Shown here: piece after piece, positions 3,227-50,664 of the stretch | Numbering within the stretch: position 1 is the first letter of the stretch | How the letters are laid out: every line of letters starts with the position of its first letter | Sequence record: NC_070998.1 | Direction: 5' to 3' (one strand) | DNA length: 64,000 bases | Notes under the pieces: generated by a model | Told to the model about the DNA's origin: nothing | The model's database searches: none | Seen by the model: the letters and a program-made list of their open reading frames with translations, nothing else | Position numbers and translations under genes: made by a program

Positions 3227-4102
3227 ATGATTATAAATGGTTACGACACCACAGTCGGTAGTCGTTTTAAAGTAAAAGACAAAGCAACTGAAACCATTCG
3301 AATGCTCCAAAGTAGCGATAAATTGGAGTTGGTGGATCAACGTGGGGTTTACGCAATCTCTCACAAGAATGATTACAATCTTCCTCCTTTTATCTTCCCT
3401 ATTTCCACGCAAAACTACATGCGTGAAAAAGTAACTATTTTTGATCAACGTCCGTACATTAATAAGGAAGGTAGAAACGTTAATCTTCCCGAATATAATG
3501 TCATGTTGTTAGCTGCCTGTTTGCAACAAGATCTGCAAAACAATCAAACCACTTTGATCAAATCAGTTCGTCCATTTACTATCAAAGCATTCGCTAATGC
3601 AATGGGTCGTAAACTGGAACGCATGGTAATGCTGGACGTGAATCAATCTATGGTGGTTCGCGTCATCCTAGCTTATTATTATGTTTGTCTTCTGGAAAAT
3701 AGTCGAGATGACTTTGCATTCGTAGCCCAGAACAGCATTCATGGTGCGCTGCGTTTTCCTATTCCTTTTATCCAAGAGACAATCAAAGATTTGGGTTTTG
3801 TTAACACTCTTCCAGAACTACTGAAGGCACTGACCACTCATCCTGCTTTGCAATCTCTTTCTCGTTTGGATCTTCCAGGTCTGGTACAAGCTGGCACCAC
3901 CATCTTCTTTTCTACCTCTGGGTTTAAACAACTCATGGGTGCTGCACTAGAGATGCCTGCATTGTTCACTGCTCTGTGCTGGGGTGCTGCTACTCAACGT
4001 ATTTACCAAAACACTATGATTGGTGAAGAGTTGAACGTAAAGCAAGACAAACGTGTAGAGACCTTCATCAGTACTGTTGGATATTATTTTAAATCAGCCT
4101 AA
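3227..4102 (+). CDS. Conserved virion protein (phiKZ gp28-like)
   Basis: 291 aa, GGGA SD, syntenic position. Confidence 0.6.
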   Translation: MIINGYDTTVGSRFKVKDKATETIRMLQSSDKLELVDQRGVYAISHKNDYNLPPFIFPISTQNYMREKVTIFDQRPYINKEGRNVNLPEYNVMLLAACLQQDLQNNQTTLIKSVRPFTIKAFANAMGRKLERMVMLDVNQSMVVRVILAYYYVCLLENSRDDFAFVAQNSIHGALRFPIPFIQETIKDLGFVNTLPELLKALTTHPALQSLSRLDLPGLVQAGTTIFFSTSGFKQLMGAALEMPALFTALCWGAATQRIYQNTMIGEELNVKQDKRVETFISTVGYYFKSA

Positions 4103-4118
4103 TCAACTGGGGTAATCC

Positions 4119-6935
4119 ATGACAGCTTATGTTGCTTCGCACACCCAGGAGAATAATCCACTTGTCGATTATGCATTTAACACGATGTGGGGTAATCCAG
4201 AATTGGATTCTCAATATCAACTTAAGCTTGCTCGGGTTTCTCCAGCGCTTGGTTATGTGAATAACTTCTTCTATATGGGGAAGTCGTTTACACTACCAAG
4301 TGAAGGTGTGTTTTATCATGTCTTTTCAATGGGTGGTTTAGACCTCGACTACTGGAATATGGGTAGTCGAGGCAATCACTGGTATCCGTTTAATACTTGG
4401 GTGAAAGCTTCCACTATTTCTCATGATCGTGGTGTTGGGTTGGATGTTTATAATAGCAAAGGTAGAATCTTTCCAAGAACTCATACCTATATTTTAAACA
4501 CCTTCGAGGGGAACACTTTTGTAGCATTCCCTATTAATGGTAATTATCCAATTCCTGTTAGTAGTAACATGTATATTCGTTGTTACACGACAGATATTAA
4601 CACTGCGATTATTCCAAGTGATCAACAAGTTAAATGGCGATTTGGTTATTCTGGGGTAGAGTTTGTAACTGGTTCTGATTTAACCAATTTGAAGAATCAT
4701 TACAATGCTTATTTAGCTTATGGTATTGGGAAAGTCACTTTCTTTGTAAATGGTGTTATTACTGATATTAGTAAGTATGTTGGTCGTATTGGTGATCTGT
4801 TAGAAGTTTACTACGATCCAACTATCAAAATGGAAGTAAAGTACCAGTACGGTAGTTTGAATGACTATTACTCTGAGAAAGATAGTAAACGAAAACTATT
4901 AATTTTCCCAGGGTTTACTGACAAACCTCGTAAATACCAGTACTTTGATGATTGTGAGTTCTTCGTAGTTAATCGGTTAACTGGGCTAGGTCTGTATTAT
5001 CATCGTAATAGTCAAGATGCTATTCGTCAGTTAACTCATCAGGATTATGGATTAACTTCTGACTACGTAAGTTTCTTGATTAGTGAACTTATTGGGTTGA
5101 GTAAAGGTAAAGCAACTGAGAATGATTTCGATGTTGTAGTTCGTTACAGAGATACTAAGTGGCAATTTAATCTAGGTCCCAATACTAGTCGTATTAATGA
5201 TCTTTACTTACTGGAAGATCCAGCAGTAATTCTTCAGGCGATGATTGGACCTCATGCTACTGTAAAAGAGTGGACTCCAAGTGAATTGGAGAAAGCTCCT
5301 TGTAACTATGTGCTCAACTCTATTGCACCAAAGATCACCACTGAACGTGTAAGAGACGCTTTAGGTTACAATGGTTGTTCTACAGCTCTGTCTGATTCAC
5401 CTCTGTATATGCCGTTCATTACTCCTGGTGATCCAGCCTTTGAAGATATCTTCCCAACACCACCTTATACTTCTGGGTTAGGATATCGTATTCCTGCTAG
5501 TTATGTTGAATCATCTACGGCTTATGAGTATAACAAAGATGGATTATATATCCGTAAGAGTTCTATTCGTAATAGTGAATGGTTTAAACCAGGCCAGGAT
5601 ACTCACTACGTGGAGTTTGTAGTAGGTCAGGCCAGTACATGGTTAGACTATGAAATTAGCAGGGTAGATGTCCAAGCTAGACCTGGTTATGGATTCCGGG
5701 TATTTAAAGCAGGCTGGATTATTGATGATAATCCAGAGCCCACACCAGATACTAGTTTGTTTGCTAATGAAGTAGCAATTACTTCTGACGGTAATGACAT
5801 CTATCCTAGTCCCACAGAGTTAAGCATTGGTGGTGATTTAACATTAGCTAATCCAGTTGGACCTGTGACCACAGGTAGACCAGATGGCAAGTGGGTCGAC
5901 ATTACTGACAGTAATGAATACCAAGTTATCGATGGTGTTATTAAATGGAAGTTCGATACCAACAACCACGTTGGATTAGTTATCTTTGATACCATTCATT
6001 TGTATAACGAATTTGATCTAACACATGTTGATAATTCCGTTTACTTTGGTATTACGCACCAGTGGGAAATTGGTGGTGTTCTAGCTACTATGGAACCTGG
6101 TCAACTTGATGTCTGGTGTAATGGACATCCATTGATTGAGAACGTGGACTATAAGGTAGAATATCCTTATGTATACATAATCTCTAAAATGTGGTTAGAT
6201 CAATCTGGTACAAACAAGTTTGCTTATCGTGGACGAGGACTCAGTGCTGGTGGTTTGATCCCATCTAGTGAACTGGGTTTTGTAATGGATGGAGTGATTG
6301 GGCACAACGGTCGTTATAATCTTCGCATAGATCGTCCCACAAAGACTATTATTAACGGTAGACTTTGGATCACCTCTGCAATTGATCAAGCTGAAGATAT
6401 TCATCACGGAACTAATGTAGCTGTATTGAACGGATTCCCCTATGAGGTAAAACACATCTACTGTGATAATAAGTATGTTGAACAGTGTGATTTACATTGG
6501 GGATTTAAAGAATCCAGAGAGCTTGATAAGAAGGTTAGTGACTACTTGACAGAACACGTTAAGTACAAACCTAAAGCTCCTGTTAATTATCCGTATCTTC
6601 AGGAAGACCGTTATAGACTCTTTAGTCCATTCTTAAGTCAAATTGTAAATGAACTGATCTTAGGTTTCTTACCGACTCCTACGCCTAGCGATACGCCGAT
6701 TAAATATCCAGACAGTGTAATTGATAATTTAACTCGTCCTTATCAATGGTTGTTGAAGTTTGATCCGATTAAACTTAACATGGATTTGAGATTCTTCTCT
6801 GTTCATCCTTACAGTAATCTTACTCGTCCAACTGTTACTCCTAATCAATTAACAATTATCTCTCGAGTTAACGATTTGTATCTCGATGGTAAGTTGAAGA
6901 TTGAAGGTTTCTTTGAGGTATCGTCTAATGTTTGA
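4119..6935 (+). CDS. Large virion/baseplate protein (phiKZ gp27-like)
   Basis: 938 aa, GGGGT SD, syntenic position. Confidence 0.6.
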   Translation: MTAYVASHTQENNPLVDYAFNTMWGNPELDSQYQLKLARVSPALGYVNNFFYMGKSFTLPSEGVFYHVFSMGGLDLDYWNMGSRGNHWYPFNTWVKASTISHDRGVGLDVYNSKGRIFPRTHTYILNTFEGNTFVAFPINGNYPIPVSSNMYIRCYTTDINTAIIPSDQQVKWRFGYSGVEFVTGSDLTNLKNHYNAYLAYGIGKVTFFVNGVITDISKYVGRIGDLLEVYYDPTIKMEVKYQYGSLNDYYSEKDSKRKLLIFPGFTDKPRKYQYFDDCEFFVVNRLTGLGLYYHRNSQDAIRQLTHQDYGLTSDYVSFLISELIGLSKGKATENDFDVVVRYRDTKWQFNLGPNTSRINDLYLLEDPAVILQAMIGPHATVKEWTPSELEKAPCNYVLNSIAPKITTERVRDALGYNGCSTALSDSPLYMPFITPGDPAFEDIFPTPPYTSGLGYRIPASYVESSTAYEYNKDGLYIRKSSIRNSEWFKPGQDTHYVEFVVGQASTWLDYEISRVDVQARPGYGFRVFKAGWIIDDNPEPTPDTSLFANEVAITSDGNDIYPSPTELSIGGDLTLANPVGPVTTGRPDGKWVDITDSNEYQVIDGVIKWKFDTNNHVGLVIFDTIHLYNEFDLTHVDNSVYFGITHQWEIGGVLATMEPGQLDVWCNGHPLIENVDYKVEYPYVYIISKMWLDQSGTNKFAYRGRGLSAGGLIPSSELGFVMDGVIGHNGRYNLRIDRPTKTIINGRLWITSAIDQAEDIHHGTNVAVLNGFPYEVKHIYCDNKYVEQCDLHWGFKESRELDKKVSDYLTEHVKYKPKAPVNYPYLQEDRYRLFSPFLSQIVNELILGFLPTPTPSDTPIKYPDSVIDNLTRPYQWLLKFDPIKLNMDLRFFSVHPYSNLTRPTVTPNQLTIISRVNDLYLDGKLKIEGFFEVSSNV

Positions 6936-19995: not shown

Positions 19996-20847
19996 TTAAC
20001 GCTTTCTTGGGACCATCATTTTCAGCGAATCACTAACACCTTTTGGATCAGCGTAAGCAAGGTGTTTCTTTAATTCTTCGTTGAAGAACTCTTTAAACTC
20101 TCTAGCAGAATCTGCGTAACGTTCTACATCATCGCGCACATCGTCCACAGATACACCATAACGACTCACAGCCTCTTGCATACCTCTACGACACGTCTTA
20201 TAAATGTAAGCCTTTGTAGCTAGTTCTACGAGTTCGTAGAACTTATCGTACATCTTAGGTGGGATTACTGAGAAGTGTTCGTCGTAAGCTAAAATTACTT
20301 TAGCGATCATATTAAACATCGCTGCGCCAGCATCTCTTATTAAGAAAGAGTTATTACCAGTCATGGTGAAACTAGTAAATGAACGCTGTACGTTACTGTC
20401 GTCCAAACCAGTCATTAGTCTATTTAGTGCATTACCCACCTGACCACCAGTTCCGCAAGCACCATTCCCACTTGTCATGTTATAACCAGATGCAATAGCG
20501 CGATTAAGATTACCCGGATACACTTCAATAACTGAAATAATCTTTCTACCGCCCGTAAGAAAATCTGGTACATTTACATGTATATGTCCGCCCTGCATGT
20601 TCGTTATTCTAGCGCTGCTTAAATCAATGATCTCACTCGAACCTCCTATCACGTTAAGCAACGGTGCAACCATCTTGAGAATTACTTTCTCACGGATACC
20701 TTGCTCAATACTGTATTCAGTGTTAACAGGAGACCATACAGAACCAAATCCGGCGTTTGGGTTATCGAACGCTAACTTTAACAAATATTCAGGAATATCA
20801 TTAACTCCTGATATTAAATTTTGAATAGAAAAGTCCACTGGTGACAT
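19996..20847 (-). CDS. Conserved phiKZ-like phage protein, probably virion-associated
   Basis: 283 aa, AAGGA SD, minus-strand TATG upstream. Confidence 0.55.
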   Translation of the reverse strand: MSPVDFSIQNLISGVNDIPEYLLKLAFDNPNAGFGSVWSPVNTEYSIEQGIREKVILKMVAPLLNVIGGSSEIIDLSSARITNMQGGHIHVNVPDFLTGGRKIISVIEVYPGNLNRAIASGYNMTSGNGACGTGGQVGNALNRLMTGLDDSNVQRSFTSFTMTGNNSFLIRDAGAAMFNMIAKVILAYDEHFSVIPPKMYDKFYELVELATKAYIYKTCRRGMQEAVSRYGVSVDDVRDDVERYADSAREFKEFFNEELKKHLAYADPKGVSDSLKMMVPRKR

Positions 20848-20920
20848 TGTGTTTATCCTTATAATTAGGTTACTTTAGGAAGTTACAAAAGATCAAAAAT
20901 CAATAATGAATAAACATAAA

Positions 20921-20950
20921 CCCTACCCTCCCAATTAAGGGAGGGTAGGG
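20921..20950. terminator. Hairpin terminator just 3' of the minus-strand structured RNA
   Basis: CCCTACCCTCCC-AATTAA-GGGAGGGTAGGG. Confidence 0.82.
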
Positions 20951-20970
20951 TAACTTATGTTAAAGTTAAA

Positions 20971-21587
20971 TGCTCATCCCACAAGACTATCCGTGACCCA
21001 CCTTGGGATCCTCAGATCCCTATGAATTACAGATAGTCTTGCAGGTCGTGCACTCACTGCACCACTTCCACCCGACGAAAGGTGGCATACAGTTTGCTCA
21101 GTTAGCTCTAGTCGTCTAGCAGAGAGGCCCTGCTCTAGGGCACTAACTTACGCGCTGCTTATAACGCATCAGATGGCCTAACCGGCAAACGATGCGGGAA
21201 CTCACTGTTAGGGCGTTCCTTAATTGAGCAAGTCAGGAATAGATGATCCCGAGTTACTCTAGACGTCTTTGTTTCATGTCGCAGTCTTACTTCGACTATA
21301 ACTTTCAGACTTATTTGTCGCTTAAACGACACTACGCTTCGTCTGAAAGGCAATACCTCTTTGTTTCACGTCCTGAGGTTTTCTATTTGGGACGATCCCG
21401 CCACGTAGGGATTTGGATGTCTCTTAGCTGTTTGAATGCACCGTTAGGATAAAGGAGATATGCTGACCGAGCATTATAACAACGGGAAACAATTAAGAGA
21501 CTACTAGGACGATCACTACTTTTGAATTACCAAACAGTGATCGAATAGGTGAACCATCAATCCCACATTCACCTAACCGGGATGGTT
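20971..21587 (-). ncRNA. Candidate large ornate non-coding RNA (~620 nt), class unknown
   Basis: GC-richer than flanks, no credible ORF, more than 10 helices; G-U pairs complete helices only on the minus strand; lies in tRNA island upstream of a terminator. Confidence 0.7.
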
Positions 21588-21968
21588 AAAGTAAAAAATT
21601 GATGATTCAAGAGGGGTGTTATCCATGAGAGAAAATACTTTCTATTAAGCTTTGAGTTTCAACAAGATGTGATAGAGCATGAAGCAACAGAAGAGTTTAT
21701 TCAAACATGGATAACAATGTGGTCCGGCGACTGGAACTCGAATCCAGAAGACTTACGTCGCCACATTTTAAGTATGGTCCCTTTACCGATTTGGGCACCG
21801 CCGGAATATATAGATCGGATCTTTCTCTTTGTTGTCATGAACACCAATAGGTCTCATATTGTTTATTTACCTTAGTCACTTCAATTCGAGTCAAAGTGTA
21901 ATTTTTCGGATAAATGTTAGATTGACAAGTTTCTTGAGAAAGATCTAAATTGAGGAAACTTTGATTAC

Positions 21969-22229
21969 CTACAATTCGATATCAAAAGATATAGGATTTT
22001 CTTTGGTGAGCTTTGCAAGGAGTTCGGTGTATCCACCAATCAACTCCCCATCAAGAAAAATCTGGGGGACGGTAGAAATCTCCTTTCCGCACAACTTACT
22101 TAATCCGTCTTTACCGATACCGGTTGTAACGATATCGATGTATTCAAAATCAATTTCTTTTTGTTCTAAGAGATCCTTAGCCTTTACACAATAAGGGCAA
22201 TTTTCTCTGCCATAAACTTGTGCTTTCAT
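21969..22229 (-). CDS. grx: Glutaredoxin
   Basis: 86 aa, CPYC, TVPQIF and GGY motifs. Confidence 0.93.
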   Translation of the reverse strand: MKAQVYGRENCPYCVKAKDLLEQKEIDFEYIDIVTTGIGKDGLSKLCGKEISTVPQIFLDGELIGGYTELLAKLTKENPISFDIEL

Positions 22230-22323
22230 TTACTACCTTAAATATGGTAATAACCAGCTAGATTAAATAAGTGAGATAATGGGTAAAATTTTCTATTATA
22301 CTTATTTAACCAAGAGATTTAAA

Positions 22324-22400
22324 TGGTGGGCCTGGTGCGATTTGAACGCACTACCTAAGCCTTATGAGGACTCAGCTCTGACCAAGTGAGCTACAGGCCC
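22324..22400 (-). tRNA. tRNA-CAT, probably Ile2 (lysidine) rather than Met
   Basis: Full cloverleaf, loop CTCATAA, encoded CCA; C4-G69 and C5-G68 match TilS/Ile determinants. Confidence 0.85.
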
Positions 22401-22420
22401 TTGATTTACAAAACTTTTAT

Positions 22421-22924
22421 CTATAGCTTGAGCGTGTATCCCATATTCCGACAAACTTTTCTGTACTCTTCAAGATTAAATACTCCATTACAATCCGTGT
22501 ATTTAATCAAAGTGTTCATAGGTAATCCGGTGATTTCACAAGCTATTCTACATGTGGGATAACGTTTACCGTTAACATTCCATCCGGTCTTTTTGCGTAG
22601 CTTTTTTAGAGCGGCGCGATGTTTTTCTTCTGAGTCCCACCAGTTATCTTTACTTGTCCCTTTCATAAGGTGTTCTGGATTACAACGCCTTCTATTATGA
22701 CATGTATGTCTAACCACTTCTTCTTTTGTTATTTCACCATTGAAGACTTTATATACAAACCTATGAACAGACTCATTCTTACCAAGAAACCCATTTGGAT
22801 GAAATTGACCATAACCACCGCTAAGAGATCTGGTCCATTCCCAACATTTGTTTTCTTGATTAATAAAAATATGTGGTTTGATTTTATCTTCAAAAATAGT
22901 AAACAGTTCTTGATTAATCGTCAT
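22421..22924 (-). mobile_element. HNH endonuclease within the tRNA cluster
   Basis: CWEW, GYG, VHR and HTCHNRRRCNPEHL motifs; ATG at 22924 after TGGTG SD (track start at 22942 is TTG). Confidence 0.85.
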
Positions 22925-22944
22925 TTTATCACCATTAATCAAAT

Positions 22945-22977
22945 AGGTCGGAGCTCTAACCGCTGAGCTAAAGACCC
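22945..22977 (-). pseudogene. 5' half of a tRNA (positions 1-33), truncated at the anticodon
   Basis: GGGTCTT TA GCTC AGCGGTTA GAGC T CCGAC CT then runs into the HNH leader; no matching 3' half seen. Confidence 0.8.
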
Positions 22978-22984
22978 TGTAAAA

Positions 22985-23061
22985 TGGTGAGCTCGGTGCG
23001 ACTTGAACGCACGACAGGAAGCTTAGAAGGCTTCTATTCTATCCAACTGAATTACGAGCTC
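22985..23061 (-). tRNA. tRNA-Arg(TCT)
   Basis: Cloverleaf, stem GAAGC/GCTTC, loop CTTCTAA, encoded CCA. Confidence 0.93.
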
Positions 23062-23070
23062 TGAATAGGT

Positions 23071-23252
23071 GGGTAGGAACAAATCCTACCCGACATGTAT
23101 TACTTCGTTCTATCCCCAAGGTGCGCAAATGTCCGACCCGGTTTAGGGTTGAAATTATCAAGTGGTAGATTCGGAAGTAATAATGTTCTTTGAAATAGGG
23201 CGAGATGTTAGACCGGACTTTATACCGGTATCTCCTGGTGGTAAGTTCACCA
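23071..23252. ncRNA. Second candidate structured RNA (~180 nt)
   Basis: Four adjacent helices (GGGTAGGA/TCCTACCC, ATTACTTC/GAAGTAAT, GAGAT-ACCGG/CCGGT-ATCTC, TGGTG/CACCA); strand unresolved. Confidence 0.45.
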
Positions 23253-23328
23253 AGCAACTTATTTTCAGTCTACTAACATCTCTAAGTCGAGTAACTAGAT
23301 TAACTATTTACTTCTACTATACTTCAAC

Positions 23329-23336
23329 ATAATATA
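23329..23336 (-). promoter_or_regulatory. Early-type promoter pointing into the tRNA/ncRNA island
   Basis: Minus-strand TATATTAT just inside the terminator at 23361..23391. Confidence 0.5.
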
Positions 23337-23360
23337 AACATTATGCTTATTAAATAAAAA

Positions 23361-23391
23361 TACTCCTAGTTAGTTGGAGTAACTAGGAGTA
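23361..23391. terminator. Hairpin terminator
   Basis: TACTCCTAGTTA-GTTGGAG-TAACTAGGAGTA flanked by A tracts. Confidence 0.75.
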
Positions 23392-23987
23392 AAACAAAAA
23401 CGCATGGAAGCATTTTTGAACGGCTCGTTACTTTTTAATTAACTCTTTATAAAAACTAATTAAAAAGTAAGTGTTGATTTAACACCTACAAAAATAAACC
23501 CTACAGGAAAAAGAACAAAACAATGAAAAGAAAACCAACGCACGAAGAACCCCGAGTTCTTCCTTAAGAACACTTTGTTAAATATCCTTAAGGAAGAGAA
23601 GATGTAGGGATCATCTTCTCTGGAATAACAAGCACCTAAACGTACATGAAAGCAAGGGAATACTTTCCTAATAGTAACTCTTTTAGAATTAACATTAGGA
23701 AAGCCACAGATATCTAGGAGGAGGAAAATATCTGTGACTTTTTATTACGGAGGCTTTTCAAATGCAAGAAGCTAACTGTTAGCGGCAGTCTGACTTCTTT
23801 AAGTTCACTTAATAAAAATAAACTTAAAGAAATAAGGTAACAAATAATATTAGATGCTACCTTAAACCAAAGCGGTATAAAAACAATCAAGGATCCGATC
23901 ATGAAAAACACTACTGGTAACTACCGAACGTTTTTCTTTCACATATAATAAATAACTTGTTGTAAATAAATAAAAATATTTAAGTCC

Positions 23988-46796: not shown

Positions 46797-48191
46797 ATGT
46801 CAACTTTAGCGAATGTACTTGAGCAGTATCAAATACAACATCTTCTTCCAACCACTCTATTTGATAAAATTATTGAAGAGTCAGGTTATACACCAGAAGG
46901 TGATGACGAAAGCTTTTACCAGCCTCTTTATCCAGACATTGAAGATTTTAATTATCGGCATGATACTACTACAGTTCATCCGATCTATCTGAATGATTTC
47001 GATTTTAATATAGAAGAAGATCGAGAAAAGATTACTGCTCTACTACGTACCGAATATGAAGGAAACAATTTCGATACAGTCGCGAGCTGCACTTGTAAGA
47101 AACATCGGACTAATGCGTACCTTGGTACAAGTTTCGTTTGTGACAGTTGTGGAGATCCTGTCACTAAACCACTTGGCGAGAAAATCGAAACCAAAGTCTG
47201 GCTTCGCACTCCTGCTAATGTGTCAGGTTTTATTAATCCTACTATTGCGGAAGTGTTCTTTCGTAAACTTAACACCAAAACTCCTAAGGTAAATTTGATG
47301 GAGTATTGGATTAACAAAGAGTTTAGAAATGAAAAGCGTTTTAGAGACCCAAGTCATAGTGCGTTTAAAATAGCTTGTAAACTAGAAGCTTTCCGTTTGT
47401 CGCTCAATATCGAATTTGGATATAACGAGTTCGTTGACAATATGGATTTGATTATCAGATCAGCTATTGAACACGACACTAATGGTGTTCTGGATCTTAC
47501 TGAAAAGAACCGTGAACATTATGCGATGTTCTGGGAAAAATTCAAATCAAGAGCTGTAGCTCAACATCTCCCTTTGCCTAACAAGGTAACCTCTATTGTC
47601 GAGTCTGACCAACGAGATAAATATGTTAATAAGGAGAAGAGTGATCTTGAAAAGATCTTTTACACCATTGCTGATATGTATCCAGCTTATGACTATCGTT
47701 CTACTGAGAACGCAGAGATCATGGGGAAGATCTTTACTAAACTCAAAAACATGATGTTGGATGTAACTGAATCTATCCTCTTCAAGAAGAAAGGGATGAT
47801 TCGATATCACGCTGGTGCTGGTAAGCTACCAATGACTGGTCGTTCTATTATCACAGGTGAATCTGGTGTTTGTCGCTCAGACACTATCATCGTTCCCTGG
47901 TTGTACGGAATAACTTGTTTGGATAAACACCTAACTAACTGGCTGTATCGGAAAGGTTATACCCCGCTGAAAGTAAAGGAGATTATACGTTCTGCTGCTA
48001 ACTTTAAACATCCTGTTGTAGAGGAGTTCTTTAACTGGGTAGAAAGTAATCGATACGCCATTGCAACGTGCGGTCGAAATCCTTCTATTCAGTATTTGTC
48101 AGCACGTGGTTTCTTTGTACAGTTTAACCGCGATGTAGAAGATAAATCCATCCGGATTCCGATCACTACAGTTAAGGAATTTAATGCCGAT
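46797..48191 (+). CDS. nvRNAP beta-prime N-terminal subunit (phiKZ gp55-like), exon 1
   Basis: CTC/CDSC zinc finger, RNPS motif; ends FNAD at GAT, a U-ending 5' splice site. Confidence 0.9.
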
Positions 48192-48665
48192 CGAAATGTA
48201 TTTAGCATACATGTGGGAAAATAACTTAAACTATTTTCTCCAGTTAAATACACTCAGTCCCCCTAGGGTGAAAGTCCTAGTGAGGTACCTTTTGAATTGC
48301 TGGAAAGTCCACAAAAGTTACTTACCTAAGCTTAATTAGAAATGATTAAGTTAGTGGTGTCGAAAGACAGAAACAACAAGTAACCTGTCCTACGCTAAGA
48401 AATAATGCTAAGGGATACTAACAAGGGATAATCAGCCTCCGAGGATCTAAGTATATTCGTGATGAATAGATAGGATTCAGGTTCAACGACTGTCCCGTGG
48501 CTGGGAGTAGGGAAATCAGATTTCCTGAAGTATTAGGCACCTAACCGTGTAAAGACGTAGGTGATGGTATAGTCTGCTCCTCTAGTAATGTAGAGGCGGG
48601 TGTCTTAGCGCACCGGTGTTATTATGATAGCCAAAATGGCGAACGGTAATAACACGGACATAAGG
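48192..48665 (+). mobile_element. Group I intron 1 (474 nt, no ORF)
   Basis: P AATTGCTGGAAA, Q ATAATCAGC, R GTTCAACGACTG, S GTATAGTC; P3 GGTACCT/AGGCACC; terminal G at 48665. Confidence 0.88.
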
Positions 48666-48674
48666 TTCGACGGT
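48666..48674 (+). CDS. nvRNAP beta-prime exon 2 (9-nt micro-exon, Phe-Asp-Gly)
   Basis: TTCGACGGT is preceded by G and ends in T; joining exons restores NADFDGD. Confidence 0.85.
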
Positions 48675-49826
48675 AAACTTTTGCTGTCATTAAACCCTTT
48701 CAATTGCTGGAAACCCCTTAGAGCTTAATCAACTAAAGCGGAATTGGAAACAATAAACGTAAATGTTTGAAAATGATTAAGATTGGGCAATCAGCAGCGA
48801 AGCTTCTAAATACATTTGAGATGAATGGATACGAAGAACGTTCAACGACTACGTTCCCAGAAGCCTGGGATGATGAGGGCGCTTTAAAGCGAAGATATAG
48901 TCTCTACCGGTATGAAAGTATCGGATGGAAATCCCTGACCGGAATTCCACGTGATCTAGCGAATCACGAAGAGTCCTAAAAAGACGGAGAACAATAATGT
49001 TGTTAATACCTGAATCCGATGGGTTCTTTGTTACTGAAACTGGTCGAGTATACGACAAAGACGGCAAAGAACGAAATTACTACACCAACGGAGACGGGTA
49101 TATTACCGCCTCGATCTCTATTGGTGGTAAGTGGCAAACATTTGGGGTACAGCGGTTGGTCATGTTAGCCTATGAACCGATTGATAATCCAGATGACTAC
49201 ACGGTCAATCATATTGACCTTGATAAAACCAATAACAACAAACCAAATTTAGAATGGCTGACAACAAAGTGGAACAATATCCATTCTGCTATTTTTAACA
49301 GTAAAGGTAAACGCCCTGTTGTCAGATGTTTGAATGGTGATGAAGAAATGTTCATCAAAGATGTGATGACGCTTCCCACAATTCTTGGTGTCGATATCCA
49401 GCAAATATGGTTTGCAATTAAGAACTCAACCCAGATAAATGGATGGTCCATTTCACCGATCCCTTATGACGATAAAGAAATTATCCGATTATTGAACAGT
49501 TCCATTGGAACTGTTGATGGACCAGTGAGACCAGTTAGATGTTTAGACATCGAAACTGGAATTTGGAAAAATTACAAGAGTATGAAAGAAATGGCTAATG
49601 AATTTGGTGTTGGTATAACACACATCAGACATCGCTTAGCTACCTTTGAACGTCCTCGTATATTTCTCCAACGTTACATTATTCTGGATGATGGAGTTTC
49701 AGATGAGTTCATCACCCCAGAACTAATCGCCATGTTAAAGATGACTTGGACGAAGAAAAGAAAGCGTTGGTCAGAACGCTGTAATTAGGACTCGATAAAA
49801 ACCACTTATGTGGAACAATGTGATAG
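48675..49826 (+). mobile_element. Group I intron 2 (1152 nt) carrying an HNH gene
   Basis: P1 GACGGT/GCTGTC with U-G; P AATTGCTGGAAA, Q AATCAGCAG, R GTTCAACGACTA, S AAGATATAGTC; terminal G at 49826. Confidence 0.9.
48997..49788 (+). CDS. Intron-encoded HNH homing endonuclease
   Basis: GDGY, VQRLV and VNHIDLDKTNNNKPNLEW motifs; GGAG SD; lies 3' of the catalytic core. Confidence 0.88.
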   Translation: MLLIPESDGFFVTETGRVYDKDGKERNYYTNGDGYITASISIGGKWQTFGVQRLVMLAYEPIDNPDDYTVNHIDLDKTNNNKPNLEWLTTKWNNIHSAIFNSKGKRPVVRCLNGDEEMFIKDVMTLPTILGVDIQQIWFAIKNSTQINGWSISPIPYDDKEIIRLLNSSIGTVDGPVRPVRCLDIETGIWKNYKSMKEMANEFGVGITHIRHRLATFERPRIFLQRYIILDDGVSDEFITPELIAMLKMTWTKKRKRWSERCN

Positions 49827-50012
49827 GATAACATGTATCTATTCTTTATCCCCGATATGGTGGGTAAAGTAAATGCGTATAGTAACTGGGGGCACCATCA
49901 AATGGTCGATCCAAACAAGCCGTTTAAAACAAGTAGATTTGTTGCAGCGACACGAACTAATCTCTTAAACATAAATAGCGTACTTCTTAATACACCGATT
50001 GAGGAGGACTAA
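49827..50012 (+). CDS. nvRNAP beta-prime exon 3
   Basis: DNMYLFFIPD...EED*, 61 aa; spliced protein is 529 aa. Confidence 0.85.
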   Translation, partial: DNMYLFFIPDMVGKVNAYSNWGHHQMVDPNKPFKTSRFVAATRTNLLNINSVLLNTPIEED

Positions 50013-50013
50013 T

Positions 50014-50664
50014 TTGAACGTAACATCAGCTTTCAATAGAGGTTGTGGTGGAAGCTTGAGTAGTGAAGCTGCCCAAGTCTACGATAGCTTCATGGGAAAT
50101 ATGTTGCAGAAATACGAAAACTTAACTGGATGGTTGAGCGAAACTGTAGATTCTGTAAAGAAAGCTCATAGCAACTTCATGTCTTCTAAAATGTGGGAGT
50201 TCTCTAACCGTATTGGTAGAACAGGACACTACGTAGGAAGATTCGAAATCGGTTATCTGTCAGAAGTTCATTTCCAACAACAAGCCACTGGGTTTATGCG
50301 TAATTACATTATGGCTAATCCTAACATGATGGCGTTGTATGAAACTGAACAAGTTTCTGGATATGGTGGAGATTTCTCTGACTTGTGTTCTGGTATTGGT
50401 CATGGTAACTATTACTATGATAAAGCGATGGACGGATTAGTTACTCAAAATGAGAGTGATCAATACTTCTATCGTACTTACCACAATTCAATGGACGAAG
50501 GTACACATCTGAGTCCTAGAGAACGTTTCGATATTCAACGTACCTGGCGTGCAACCGACCACCATATTAAGAACTTGTTTGACTCGTCTAACATTGCGGG
50601 TGGAAACATTCTTACTTTGGAAGAAGTTGAAGAACGTCGTAAAGCAGAAGAAGACAAAGAGTAA
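50014..50664 (+). CDS. Conserved Chimalliviridae core protein (probably phiKZ gp59-like)
   Basis: TTG at 50014 after GAGGAG; FMRNYIMANP, GY and YDKAMDG motifs; synteny. Confidence 0.6.
   Translation: MNVTSAFNRGCGGSLSSEAAQVYDSFMGNMLQKYENLTGWLSETVDSVKKAHSNFMSSKMWEFSNRIGRTGHYVGRFEIGYLSEVHFQQQATGFMRNYIMANPNMMALYETEQVSGYGGDFSDLCSGIGHGNYYYDKAMDGLVTQNESDQYFYRTYHNSMDEGTHLSPRERFDIQRTWRATDHHIKNLFDSSNIAGGNILTLEEVEERRKAEEDKE

Follow-up and report, generated by a model that had tools for sequence, protein, structure and literature searches.

A predicted large structured RNA beside the tRNA genes of Aeromonas phage PS1, with a 3′ domain shared among related jumbo phages

The 64,000-nt stretch of record NC_070998.1 analysed here (the window, to which positions refer unless a related locus is named) carries a minus-strand gene series of tRNA-Arg, an HNH endonuclease gene, tRNA-Met, thioredoxin and tRNA-Leu(UAA). 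This series leads into an interval closed by an intrinsic terminator, and the next gene after the terminator, on the same strand, is PS1_0014, a virion gene of the DUF7484 family. Here we describe a predicted non-coding RNA that occupies this interval (Table 1). Positions 20900-21720 are found at 100% identity and at the same coordinates in Aeromonas phages PS1 and PS2, and at 75-76% identity in AVP1, pAEv1810 and ACP1, all members of Ferozepurvirus, which is a genus of the Chimalliviridae, the nucleus-forming jumbo phages; in the records of PS1, PS2, AVP1, pAEv1810 and ACP1 the RNA region is without annotation. We put at about 85% the probability that 20971-21719 is a genuine gene for a structured RNA whose family is missing from both Rfam 15 and the searchable papers. 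The last third of this RNA, its 3′ domain (20971-21224), is a member of a hitherto undescribed RNA family found in related jumbo phages.

A conserved, non-coding sequence read from the minus strand

An initial annotation, made by a model from the sequence, had placed an ornate non-coding RNA of ~620 nt at 20971-21587 on the minus strand. Its non-coding and structured character and its strand hold up, but the start moves ~130 nt further 5′, to 21719, because conserved structured sequence runs up to tRNA-Leu, bringing the length to ~750 nt. This sequence is conserved in AVP1, pAEv1810, ACP1 and metagenome contigs, and its G+C content is 0.43-0.48, as against 0.35-0.38 in the flanks. Folding is strong relative to dinucleotide shuffles (z = -5.7); since the opposite strand gives the same z, the minimum free energy cannot pick the strand. 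Base pairing can: read on the minus strand, the consensus helices of seven distinct sequences from the PS1 clade reach 97.8% pairing, versus 88.4% on the plus, in keeping with the earlier remark that G-U pairs favour minus. The terminator that had been said to follow the RNA is the hairpin at 20951-20920.

Coding potential is slight. The longest open reading frames (ORFs) in the region span 64 and 69 amino acids, and none of the three longest is conserved. The best case for one or more small proteins is the 64-codon minus-strand ORF at 21159-21353, which has a TTG start and is open in six of the seven PS1-clade sequences. Its first 40 codons, however, lie within an invariant core, so that an open frame there is uninformative, and its last third is frame-shifted by indels, with a stop in ACP1. 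Plus-strand ORFs are likewise broken in several relatives (AVP1, pAEv1810 and ACP1 interrupt the longest), and substitutions track base pairing rather than codon periodicity. We consider the chance that this region is there to encode protein negligible.

Helices and an ultra-conserved core within the PS1 clade

Helices within the PS1 clade were tested on an alignment of the same seven sequences, whose RNAalifold consensus contains 16 compensatory pairs, 27 one-sided pairs and 151 pairs that never vary. Most of the helices proposed in the initial annotation are recovered. CGATCACT/AGTGATCG, GTCTCTTA/TAAGAGAC and CTTTCAGAC/GTCTGAAAG are intact and, being almost invariant, yield no covariation evidence, and CCACC/GGTGG is intact with compensatory changes and covaries strongly across clades. 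The 13-bp terminal helix keeps 11 of its 13 base pairs, with compensatory changes and strong cross-clade covariation, but the GGGATC/GATCCC pairing it encloses proves to be a variable tip; GTGCA/TGCAC is kept within the PS1 clade, though other clades conserve it only in part, and where CGCATC/GATGCG stands in PS1 the AVP1 clade has a hairpin of different sequence. Six of the seven sequences disrupt two overlapping helices, TAGGTGAA/TTCACCTA and AACCATC/GATGGTT, and the pseudoknot or switch suggested for them is lost on comparison; a covarying pseudoknot is found elsewhere, at 21208-21204/21093-21089, and the place of the two helices is taken by GAAUCAUCAA (21608-21599)/UUGAUGGUUC (21560-21551).

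Further 5′, a domain of ~100 nt is closed by UUAUCCAUG/CAUGGAUAA, which tolerates C-G to U-G changes on the minus strand only, and contains an inner helix (21702-21696/21637-21631) that carries compensatory pairs. The loop of the CGAUCACUGUUU/AAGUAGUGAUCG hairpin has taken up a 47-nt insertion in the AVP1 clade.

At the centre lies a 240-nt core that is nearly identical between PS1 and AVP1 (Table 1); the genes flanking the RNA are 84-90% identical overall between the same two phages, and 65-74% identical at third codon positions. Pairs of the two predicted core helices do not vary, save for an inner hairpin at 21330-21317 with two compensatory pairs. An invariant core combined with variable hairpins that compensate or accept insertions is typical of functional RNAs with dense tertiary or protein contacts. 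The RNA also contains two copies, 92 nt apart, of an 18-nt A-rich motif, GACRUGAAACAAAGASGU, which occurs nowhere else in the window and may be a protein-binding or tertiary-contact motif.

The 5′ and central part, 21225-21719, is detectable in Ferozepurvirus phages only. No counterpart of the ~500 nt between tRNA-Leu and the first hairpin of the 3′ domain was detected outside the PS1 clade, and an exact 27-nt core pattern had no match in IMG/VR.

Table 1. Positions of the RNA, its parts and its neighbours. Positions are those of the window, except in the last row, where they follow our labels (L) for related loci.
Feature	Position	Strand	Evidence or remark
Predicted non-coding RNA, ~750 nt, from the base after the tRNA-Leu CCA end to the end of the terminal helix	20971-21719	-	ORF, G+C, conservation and strand data
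5′ domain, ~100 nt, closed by UUAUCCAUG/CAUGGAUAA, with inner hairpins	21617-21717	-	RNAalifold
Helix GAAUCAUCAA/UUGAUGGUUC	21551-21608	-	10/10 pairs kept in 7 sequences; 2 compensatory, 2 one-sided
Hairpin CGAUCACUGUUU/AAGUAGUGAUCG	21510-21543	-	12 pairs: 3 with one-sided G-U changes, 0 broken
Ultra-conserved core, 240 nt	21280-21519	-	230/239 positions (96%) identical, PS1 vs AVP1
Predicted core helix GUCUCUUAAUUGUUU/AAACAGCUAAGAGAC	21501-21419	-	Pairs do not vary
Predicted core helix CUUUCAGAC/GUCUGAAAG	21349-21302	-	Pairs do not vary except in inner hairpin
A-rich motif, copy 1, GACGUGAAACAAAGAGGU	21355-21372	-	18 nt
A-rich motif, copy 2, GACAUGAAACAAAGACGU	21263-21280	-	18 nt
Variable hairpin GAGUAA.UCGGGAU/UUCCUGA.UUGCUC	21226-21259	-	4 compensatory and 2 one-sided pairs in PS1 clade
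Module 1 hairpin GGAAC-GCCCUAACAGUGA-GUUCC	21197-21219	-	Loop kept across clades (GCCYUAACNGUGA); stem covaries
Pseudoknot strand 1, ACAGU, in module 1 loop	21204-21208	-	Pairs with 21093-21089
Pseudoknot strand 2, ACUGU, 5′ flank of module 2	21089-21093	-	Alternative local partner 21061-21064
Module 2 hairpin CCACC-UUUCGUCG-GGUGG	21068-21085	-	5/5 pairs compensatory; 100% of cells pair (18 distinct sequences)
Long terminal helix CUGCAAGACUAUC/GAUAGUCUUGUGG, variable tip	20979-21044	-	11/15 pairs (helix 3) compensatory across clades; 3 within PS1 clade
Match to covariance model R1 (module 2 and terminal helix)	20971-21098	-	91.9 bits, E = 1.9e-21; sole credible match in window
Intrinsic terminator hairpin, 13 bp, 9 G-C, then UUUAUGUUU	20920-20951	-	3′ of RNA
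tRNA-Leu(UAA), directly upstream of RNA	21720-21804	-	ARAGORN; Rfam tRNA, 46.7 bits
tRNA-Met	22400-22324	-	ARAGORN
HNH endonuclease gene, free-standing	22421-22924	-	Between tRNA-Arg and tRNA-Met
tRNA-Arg	23061-22985	-	ARAGORN
Upstream hammerhead-ended RNA of relatives, unannotated	L161:3956-4680, L163:3895-4601, L164:3901-4598, L166:3856-4639, L168:4230-4913, L171:4238-4916, L162:~3810-4907, L170:3832-4590, L005:4430-5048		

A 3′ domain shared within a sub-clade of the Chimalliviridae

More than 20 related chimalliviruses have, at the same locus, an unannotated element homologous to the 3′ domain. The downstream DUF7484 protein is conserved across the Chimalliviridae, and the shared gene order runs from tRNAs through a glutaredoxin or thioredoxin gene and one or more further tRNAs to a gene-free gap, 0.55-1.35 kb long in the relatives, and then DUF7484. 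OBP, SXP01, N1M2, Yubaba, Kc263, AH04, Survivor, pEt-SU, D6, CF8, ZPAH34, AerS_266 and AhC3_1 have this order in common, as do four contigs from IMG/VR and three from Logan. RisingSun, phiKT1019, FishSpeaker and EL, which are more distant chimalliviruses, have neither this gene arrangement nor the 3′-domain element.

Neither blastn nor nhmmer matched the PS1 RNA to the gaps of its relatives; the evidence that the 3′ domains are homologous comes from motifs, structure and a covariance model. Four modules are common to the PS1 RNA and its relatives: two hairpins (modules 1 and 2), a small hairpin and a long terminal helix. Module 2 takes the form of CAAACNGU, a covarying hairpin and GAAGUKGU, and the conserved family motifs are the GCCYUAACNGUGA loop, CAAACNGU and GAAGUUGU.

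The covariance model, R1, covers module 2 and the terminal helix only and was built from 17 seed sequences, PS1 among them, so that its high score in the window is expected. Matches outside the seed comprise the Logan contigs L195 (81.1 bits), L194 (47.5) and L193 (41.7), the related locus L005 (56.8) and D6 (21.2 bits, E = 0.005); SXP01, Survivor, pEt-SU, RisingSun, phiKT1019, FishSpeaker and EL gave none. Shorter segments were aligned because MAFFT misplaced the Aeromonas-branch sequences, and in the 17-sequence alignment from module 2 to the end RNAalifold found compensatory changes in 16 of 24 pairs. Fitted to the model, 18 distinct sequences give an alignment in which 95.6% of cells pair and 17 of the 24 pairs have changed on both sides. 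Shuffling lowers the paired fraction to 71.2%, and sliding the partners by 1-3 columns lowers it to 36-45%; for covariation the score is 0.716 as observed and 0.233 when shuffled, and not one of 500 shuffles reached any observed measure. The collection of homologs and search for covariation that the initial annotation had proposed as a check thus found compensatory pairs in the 3′ domain.

Pattern searches added little. A loose two-part pattern met mostly chance matches in IMG/VR, only L112 being real among the matches listed, and a module 2 pattern, biased because it required a UUU loop, returned only close relatives of AVP1 and L006 from IMG/VR and metagenomes. Three other matches to the module 2 pattern (L129, L136 and L153) lie in coding DNA and were rejected as chance. 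A more general pattern gave 14 new loci in IMG/VR, none of which R1 confirmed. Small coding sequences (CDSs) deposited as hypothetical proteins lie inside or overlap the RNA at L163:3874-4386 (N1M2_252), L166:4527-4718, L002:3796-3912 and L167:4187-4309, and are probably mis-annotations.

A family-wide pseudoknot and the question of a cis-acting element

ACNGU in the loop of module 1 and ACN′GU before module 2 pair at five of five positions in all 21 distinct sequences. The central pair takes three forms, each in seven sequences: A-U in the PS1 clade, U-A in the group of L005, AH04, AhC3_1 and CF8, and C-G in OBP, N1M2, Yubaba, Kc263, D6, ZPAH34 and AerS_266. Two Logan contigs with a more diverged 3′ domain, L193 (1850-2260) and L194 (3495-3900), have AUCAU/AUGAU instead, compensatory at pairs 2 and 4.

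ACN′GU can also form a four-pair helix with UKGU after module 2. This alternative is 100% pairable, its varying position being U-G, A-U or G-U, although L193 and L194 can form only three of the pairs. Pseudoknot and local helix are mutually exclusive, the pseudoknot being the better supported. As its second strand can instead extend the module 2 hairpin, a two-state switch between the pseudoknot and a local extension of module 2 is possible.

Such exclusive pairings at 21089-21093 resemble switch logic, and the RNA lies directly upstream of same-strand late virion genes and ends at a terminator. It might then be a cis-acting element, either a leader, attenuator or riboswitch governing read-through into the virion genes, or a structured 3′ trailer lending stability to the transcript of the tRNA operon. 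Neither the terminator nor the downstream genes are placed as a riboswitch or attenuator leader would demand. The terminator stem overlaps no conserved helix and is set apart from them by 20-40 unconserved nt, and genes intervene between terminator and DUF7484 in pAEv1810 (an opposite-strand HNH gene), D6 (a CDS), L005 and L007. A length of 750 nt with a 96%-identical core exceeds the needs of a stabiliser, and in relatives a hammerhead ribozyme severs the domain from the sequence that precedes it. A cis-acting role is in our judgement unlikely.

Hammerhead ribozymes at the domain border in relatives

In Survivor, pEt-SU, SXP01, N1M2, Yubaba, OBP, Kc263, AH04 and the loci L005-L007 and L112, the gap opens with a conserved RNA of 650-750 nt, and in these 12 relatives the 3′ end of that RNA is a canonical hammerhead with a full core. 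The same core pattern occurs in gaps of similar size in three further contigs (L193-L195). Anchor-based scripts were used to count the stems. Stem I, of 3 bp, comes in four versions (ACC/GGU, CAG/CUG, UAU/AUA and CAU/AUG); CUGANGA is invariant in the 12 relatives, its N (N7) being C, U or A; stem II is GUCC/GGAC or GUCU/AGAC and is followed by GAAAC, a long stem III and GUC at the cleavage site. A pseudoknot of 4-7 bp, in six sequence versions, joins the 5′ flank of stem I to loop II, and stems I and II covary along with it. With stems II and III closed and stem I open, the topology is type I. RNAalifold, run on MAFFT-aligned sequences of this region, missed the hammerhead fold, and none of the relatives' hammerheads reached the gathering score of an Rfam hammerhead model, the best being 16.3 bits (Hammerhead_3).

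Hammerheads that process long phage or prophage transcripts are common in prophages, and a pseudoknot between stems I and II often stabilises natural examples (Perreault et al. 2011, PMC3088659). The ribozyme described here likewise bears a pseudoknot, and it sits exactly at the border of the domain shared with PS1. It differs from known phage and prophage examples in that it separates two large non-coding RNAs rather than mRNAs, and the PS1 clade is without a hammerhead core. In Survivor, pEt-SU and SXP01 a terminator directly follows the cleavage site; in the other hammerhead-bearing relatives module 1 starts 4-10 nt after it. In CF8, ZPAH34, AerS_266, AhC3_1 and D6 the upstream RNA is missing, and the 3′ domain comes after a tRNA or a tRNA-like gene. 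The tRNA region 5′ of the domain holds tRNA-like genes that are weak or lack annotation in the Aeromonas phages AhC3_1 (L165:4242-4324), AerS_266 (L173:4388-4465) and D6 (L167:2599-2672), with Rfam tRNA scores of 55.6, 29.6 and 30.3 bits, respectively. The 3′ domain thus behaves as an independent module, a ribozyme generating its 5′ end in some phages and tRNA processing doing so in others, and the placement of the hammerhead suggests a free-standing RNA.

In the PS1 clade, neither strand of 20900-21720 contains the hammerhead core pattern (CUGANGA ... GAAA ... UH) or an Rfam hammerhead at E ≤ 10. This absence, set against a ribozyme carried by almost all relatives, together with the HNH endonuclease genes that cluster at the locus, is what could be expected of a decaying relic, whether of the relatives' hammerhead RNA, of a mobile intron or of degraded tRNA genes. 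When 12 segments were aligned and compared with 200 dinucleotide shuffles in a search for a hammerhead remnant, 21287-21264 weakly resembled loop II of the Yubaba hammerhead (z = 3.5; 2 of 200 shuffles), but the other comparisons stayed below z = 2 and this one in 12 fails after multiple testing. Decay also sits badly with the strong purifying pattern, in which a 96%-identical core is accompanied by compensatory substitutions in the variable hairpins, with a 3′ domain that is fully intact by R1 score and pseudoknot, and with the lack of any group I or II intron, tRNA or tmRNA signal inside the region. We therefore hold a relic to be very unlikely.

Relation to known RNA classes

The covariance search proposed in the initial annotation found no family for this RNA. 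In cmscan runs against Rfam 15 (4227 families) at the gathering score, the only hits near the region were the three tRNAs and the only other one in the window was a group I intron (RF00028, at 48610-48924); 16 related loci gave tRNAs only. With lax filters and E ≤ 10, 20600-23400 matched no model for ROOL, GOLLD, a ribozyme, an intron, RNase P, tmRNA or a riboswitch. Neither ARAGORN nor Rfam placed a tRNA or tmRNA inside 20971-21719, and group I and group II introns are likewise absent there.

The same annotation had offered two identities, a divergent member of the ROOL or GOLLD classes or a new giant RNA class in nucleus-forming phages. Its background statement that ROOL and GOLLD occur beside phage tRNA genes agrees with PMC5737381, according to which they lie near tRNAs, often in phages and prophages, and are possibly co-transcribed with the tRNAs. 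The PS1 RNA shares this genomic habit: it measures several hundred nt, has many helices and pseudoknots, and adjoins phage tRNA genes. It nevertheless matches neither covariance model (the ROOL consensus, with multistem junctions and pseudoknots, is ~580 nt) even under the permissive search, and it belongs to Chimalliviridae that infect Gammaproteobacteria. ROOL and GOLLD are found mainly in Firmicutes and environmental prophages. The GCCYUAACNGUGA loop and the two other family motifs are not known as features of either class. Divergent membership of either class is thus highly improbable, and the second identity fares better, the RNA being absent from Rfam 15 and the genus belonging to the Chimalliviridae. 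ROOL and GOLLD reportedly form multimeric RNA cages (bioRxiv 10.1101/2024.12.08.627333).

A second point of comparison is the tRNA cluster of phage T4, which yields two stable non-tRNA RNAs, species 1 and 2 (RNAs C and D), of ~120-140 nt that are released by tRNA processing. The likeness lies in stable non-tRNA RNAs inside a phage tRNA operon; the PS1 RNA differs in its ~750 nt, its long-range pairings and its family-wide pseudoknot. A literature search, which covered few subscription journals, found no paper on such an RNA in these phages. Collectively, the RNA is a new large class within the known kind of large ornate phage RNAs beside tRNAs, and is not ROOL or GOLLD.

Operon context and other features of the window

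Terminator-like hairpins lie upstream of tRNA-Arg, at 23489-23361, and no terminator hairpin of strength comparable to the one after the RNA was found between tRNA-Arg and 20951, which makes co-transcription of the RNA with the tRNAs plausible. A sigma-70 promoter scan is uninformative, as it found eight sites where 10.1 were expected. Chimalliviruses such as PS1 transcribe with their own RNA polymerases. The terminator belongs to a module, CCCUACC..GGUAGGG-UUUAUG, that stands 3′ of the RNA in nearly all relatives and whose sequence is kept across genera, with homologous sites in L002-L007 and L161-L173; it may combine a terminator with a phage late promoter.

HNH genes have been gained and lost at the locus: AVP1 is without the one that PS1 has between tRNA-Arg and tRNA-Met, and pAEv1810 has a different one, located directly after the terminator of the RNA (L003:3858-4910). 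Elsewhere in the window, the group I intron is on the plus strand (79.6 bits) and has on its 3′ side an ORF at 48997-49788 (+) with a weak HNH_3 match; together these look like an intron with its homing endonuclease. The ORFs flanking the intron (46797-48224 and 49999-50664) have no Pfam match.

Discussion

The case for a structured RNA gene at 20971-21719 joins a conserved, non-coding sequence with strand-specific pairing to a 3′ domain whose covariation extends across clades. Several points weigh against it or narrow it. The transcript, its two ends and its stability are all deduced from DNA sequence, and the PS1-clade sample amounts to two lineages in effect. The fold of the core is a prediction, because the most conserved 240 nt show no covariation, and part of their conservation could be due to recent recombination, given the many homing endonuclease genes of the locus. 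The pairing figures for the model-fitted alignment (A8) are somewhat inflated by its having been fitted to the R1 structure; the margin, the slid controls and the non-seed matches make an alignment artefact unlikely. As for the 5′ and central part of the PS1 RNA, blastn, nhmmer and local alignment neither show nor exclude homology to the upstream RNA of the relatives. Any scaffold, ribonucleoprotein or decoy role would be borrowed by analogy from GOLLD and ROOL.

As we picture it, the RNA would be the last element of a tRNA operon that runs tRNA-Arg, HNH, tRNA-Met, thioredoxin, tRNA-Leu, RNA, terminator. Its 5′ end would be released through 3′ processing of tRNA-Leu and its 3′ end set by the terminator at 20951-20920. 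Within the 3′ domain, the loop of module 1 forms the pseudoknot with the segment before module 2, and the long helix closes the domain. Because PS1 is without the ribozyme, its two parts would either stay joined or be cut by host RNases. A stable trans-acting RNA is fairly likely, rather than a cis element, because genes intervene downstream in several relatives, the terminator stands apart from the helices of the RNA, and in other phages the homologous domain is cut out by a ribozyme. By analogy, its role would most likely be that of a scaffold, the RNA part of a ribonucleoprotein or a decoy, made along with the phage tRNAs.

To our knowledge, very few RNA classes above 500 nt have been described besides rRNA, group II introns, GOLLD, ROOL, OLE and HEARO, and each of them has raised questions about what RNA can do alone. 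The present family, which has good support from covariation, occurs in cultured, tractable phages, among them PS1 (on Aeromonas hydrophila ATCC 7966), OBP (on Pseudomonas fluorescens), N1M2 and Yubaba, within a nucleus-forming phage family whose RNA biology is under active study. It also provides a natural series for dissecting the modules: upstream RNA and hammerhead only (Survivor, pEt-SU and SXP01), both modules (OBP, N1M2, Kc263 and AH04), the downstream module only, after a tRNA (CF8, ZPAH34 and D6), and the fused, ribozyme-free form of PS1. With the family come hammerheads missed by current Rfam models, and it accounts for an unannotated ~1-kb gap in more than 12 deposited genomes.

More tentatively, and on balance we doubt that all of it will hold, the OBP/PS1 sub-clade may possess a giant-RNA system made up of a self-maturing hammerhead RNA of 650-750 nt and a pseudoknot RNA of 250-300 nt that may toggle, with PS1 carrying a ribozyme-free fusion of the latter to its core, and the whole having a dedicated role in the biology of nucleus-forming phages. 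Were this so, such roles might include the traffic of RNA or tRNAs, or that of a decoy for host defences that target RNA, and the fused 240-nt core of PS1 could itself be a new catalytic or protein-binding RNA.

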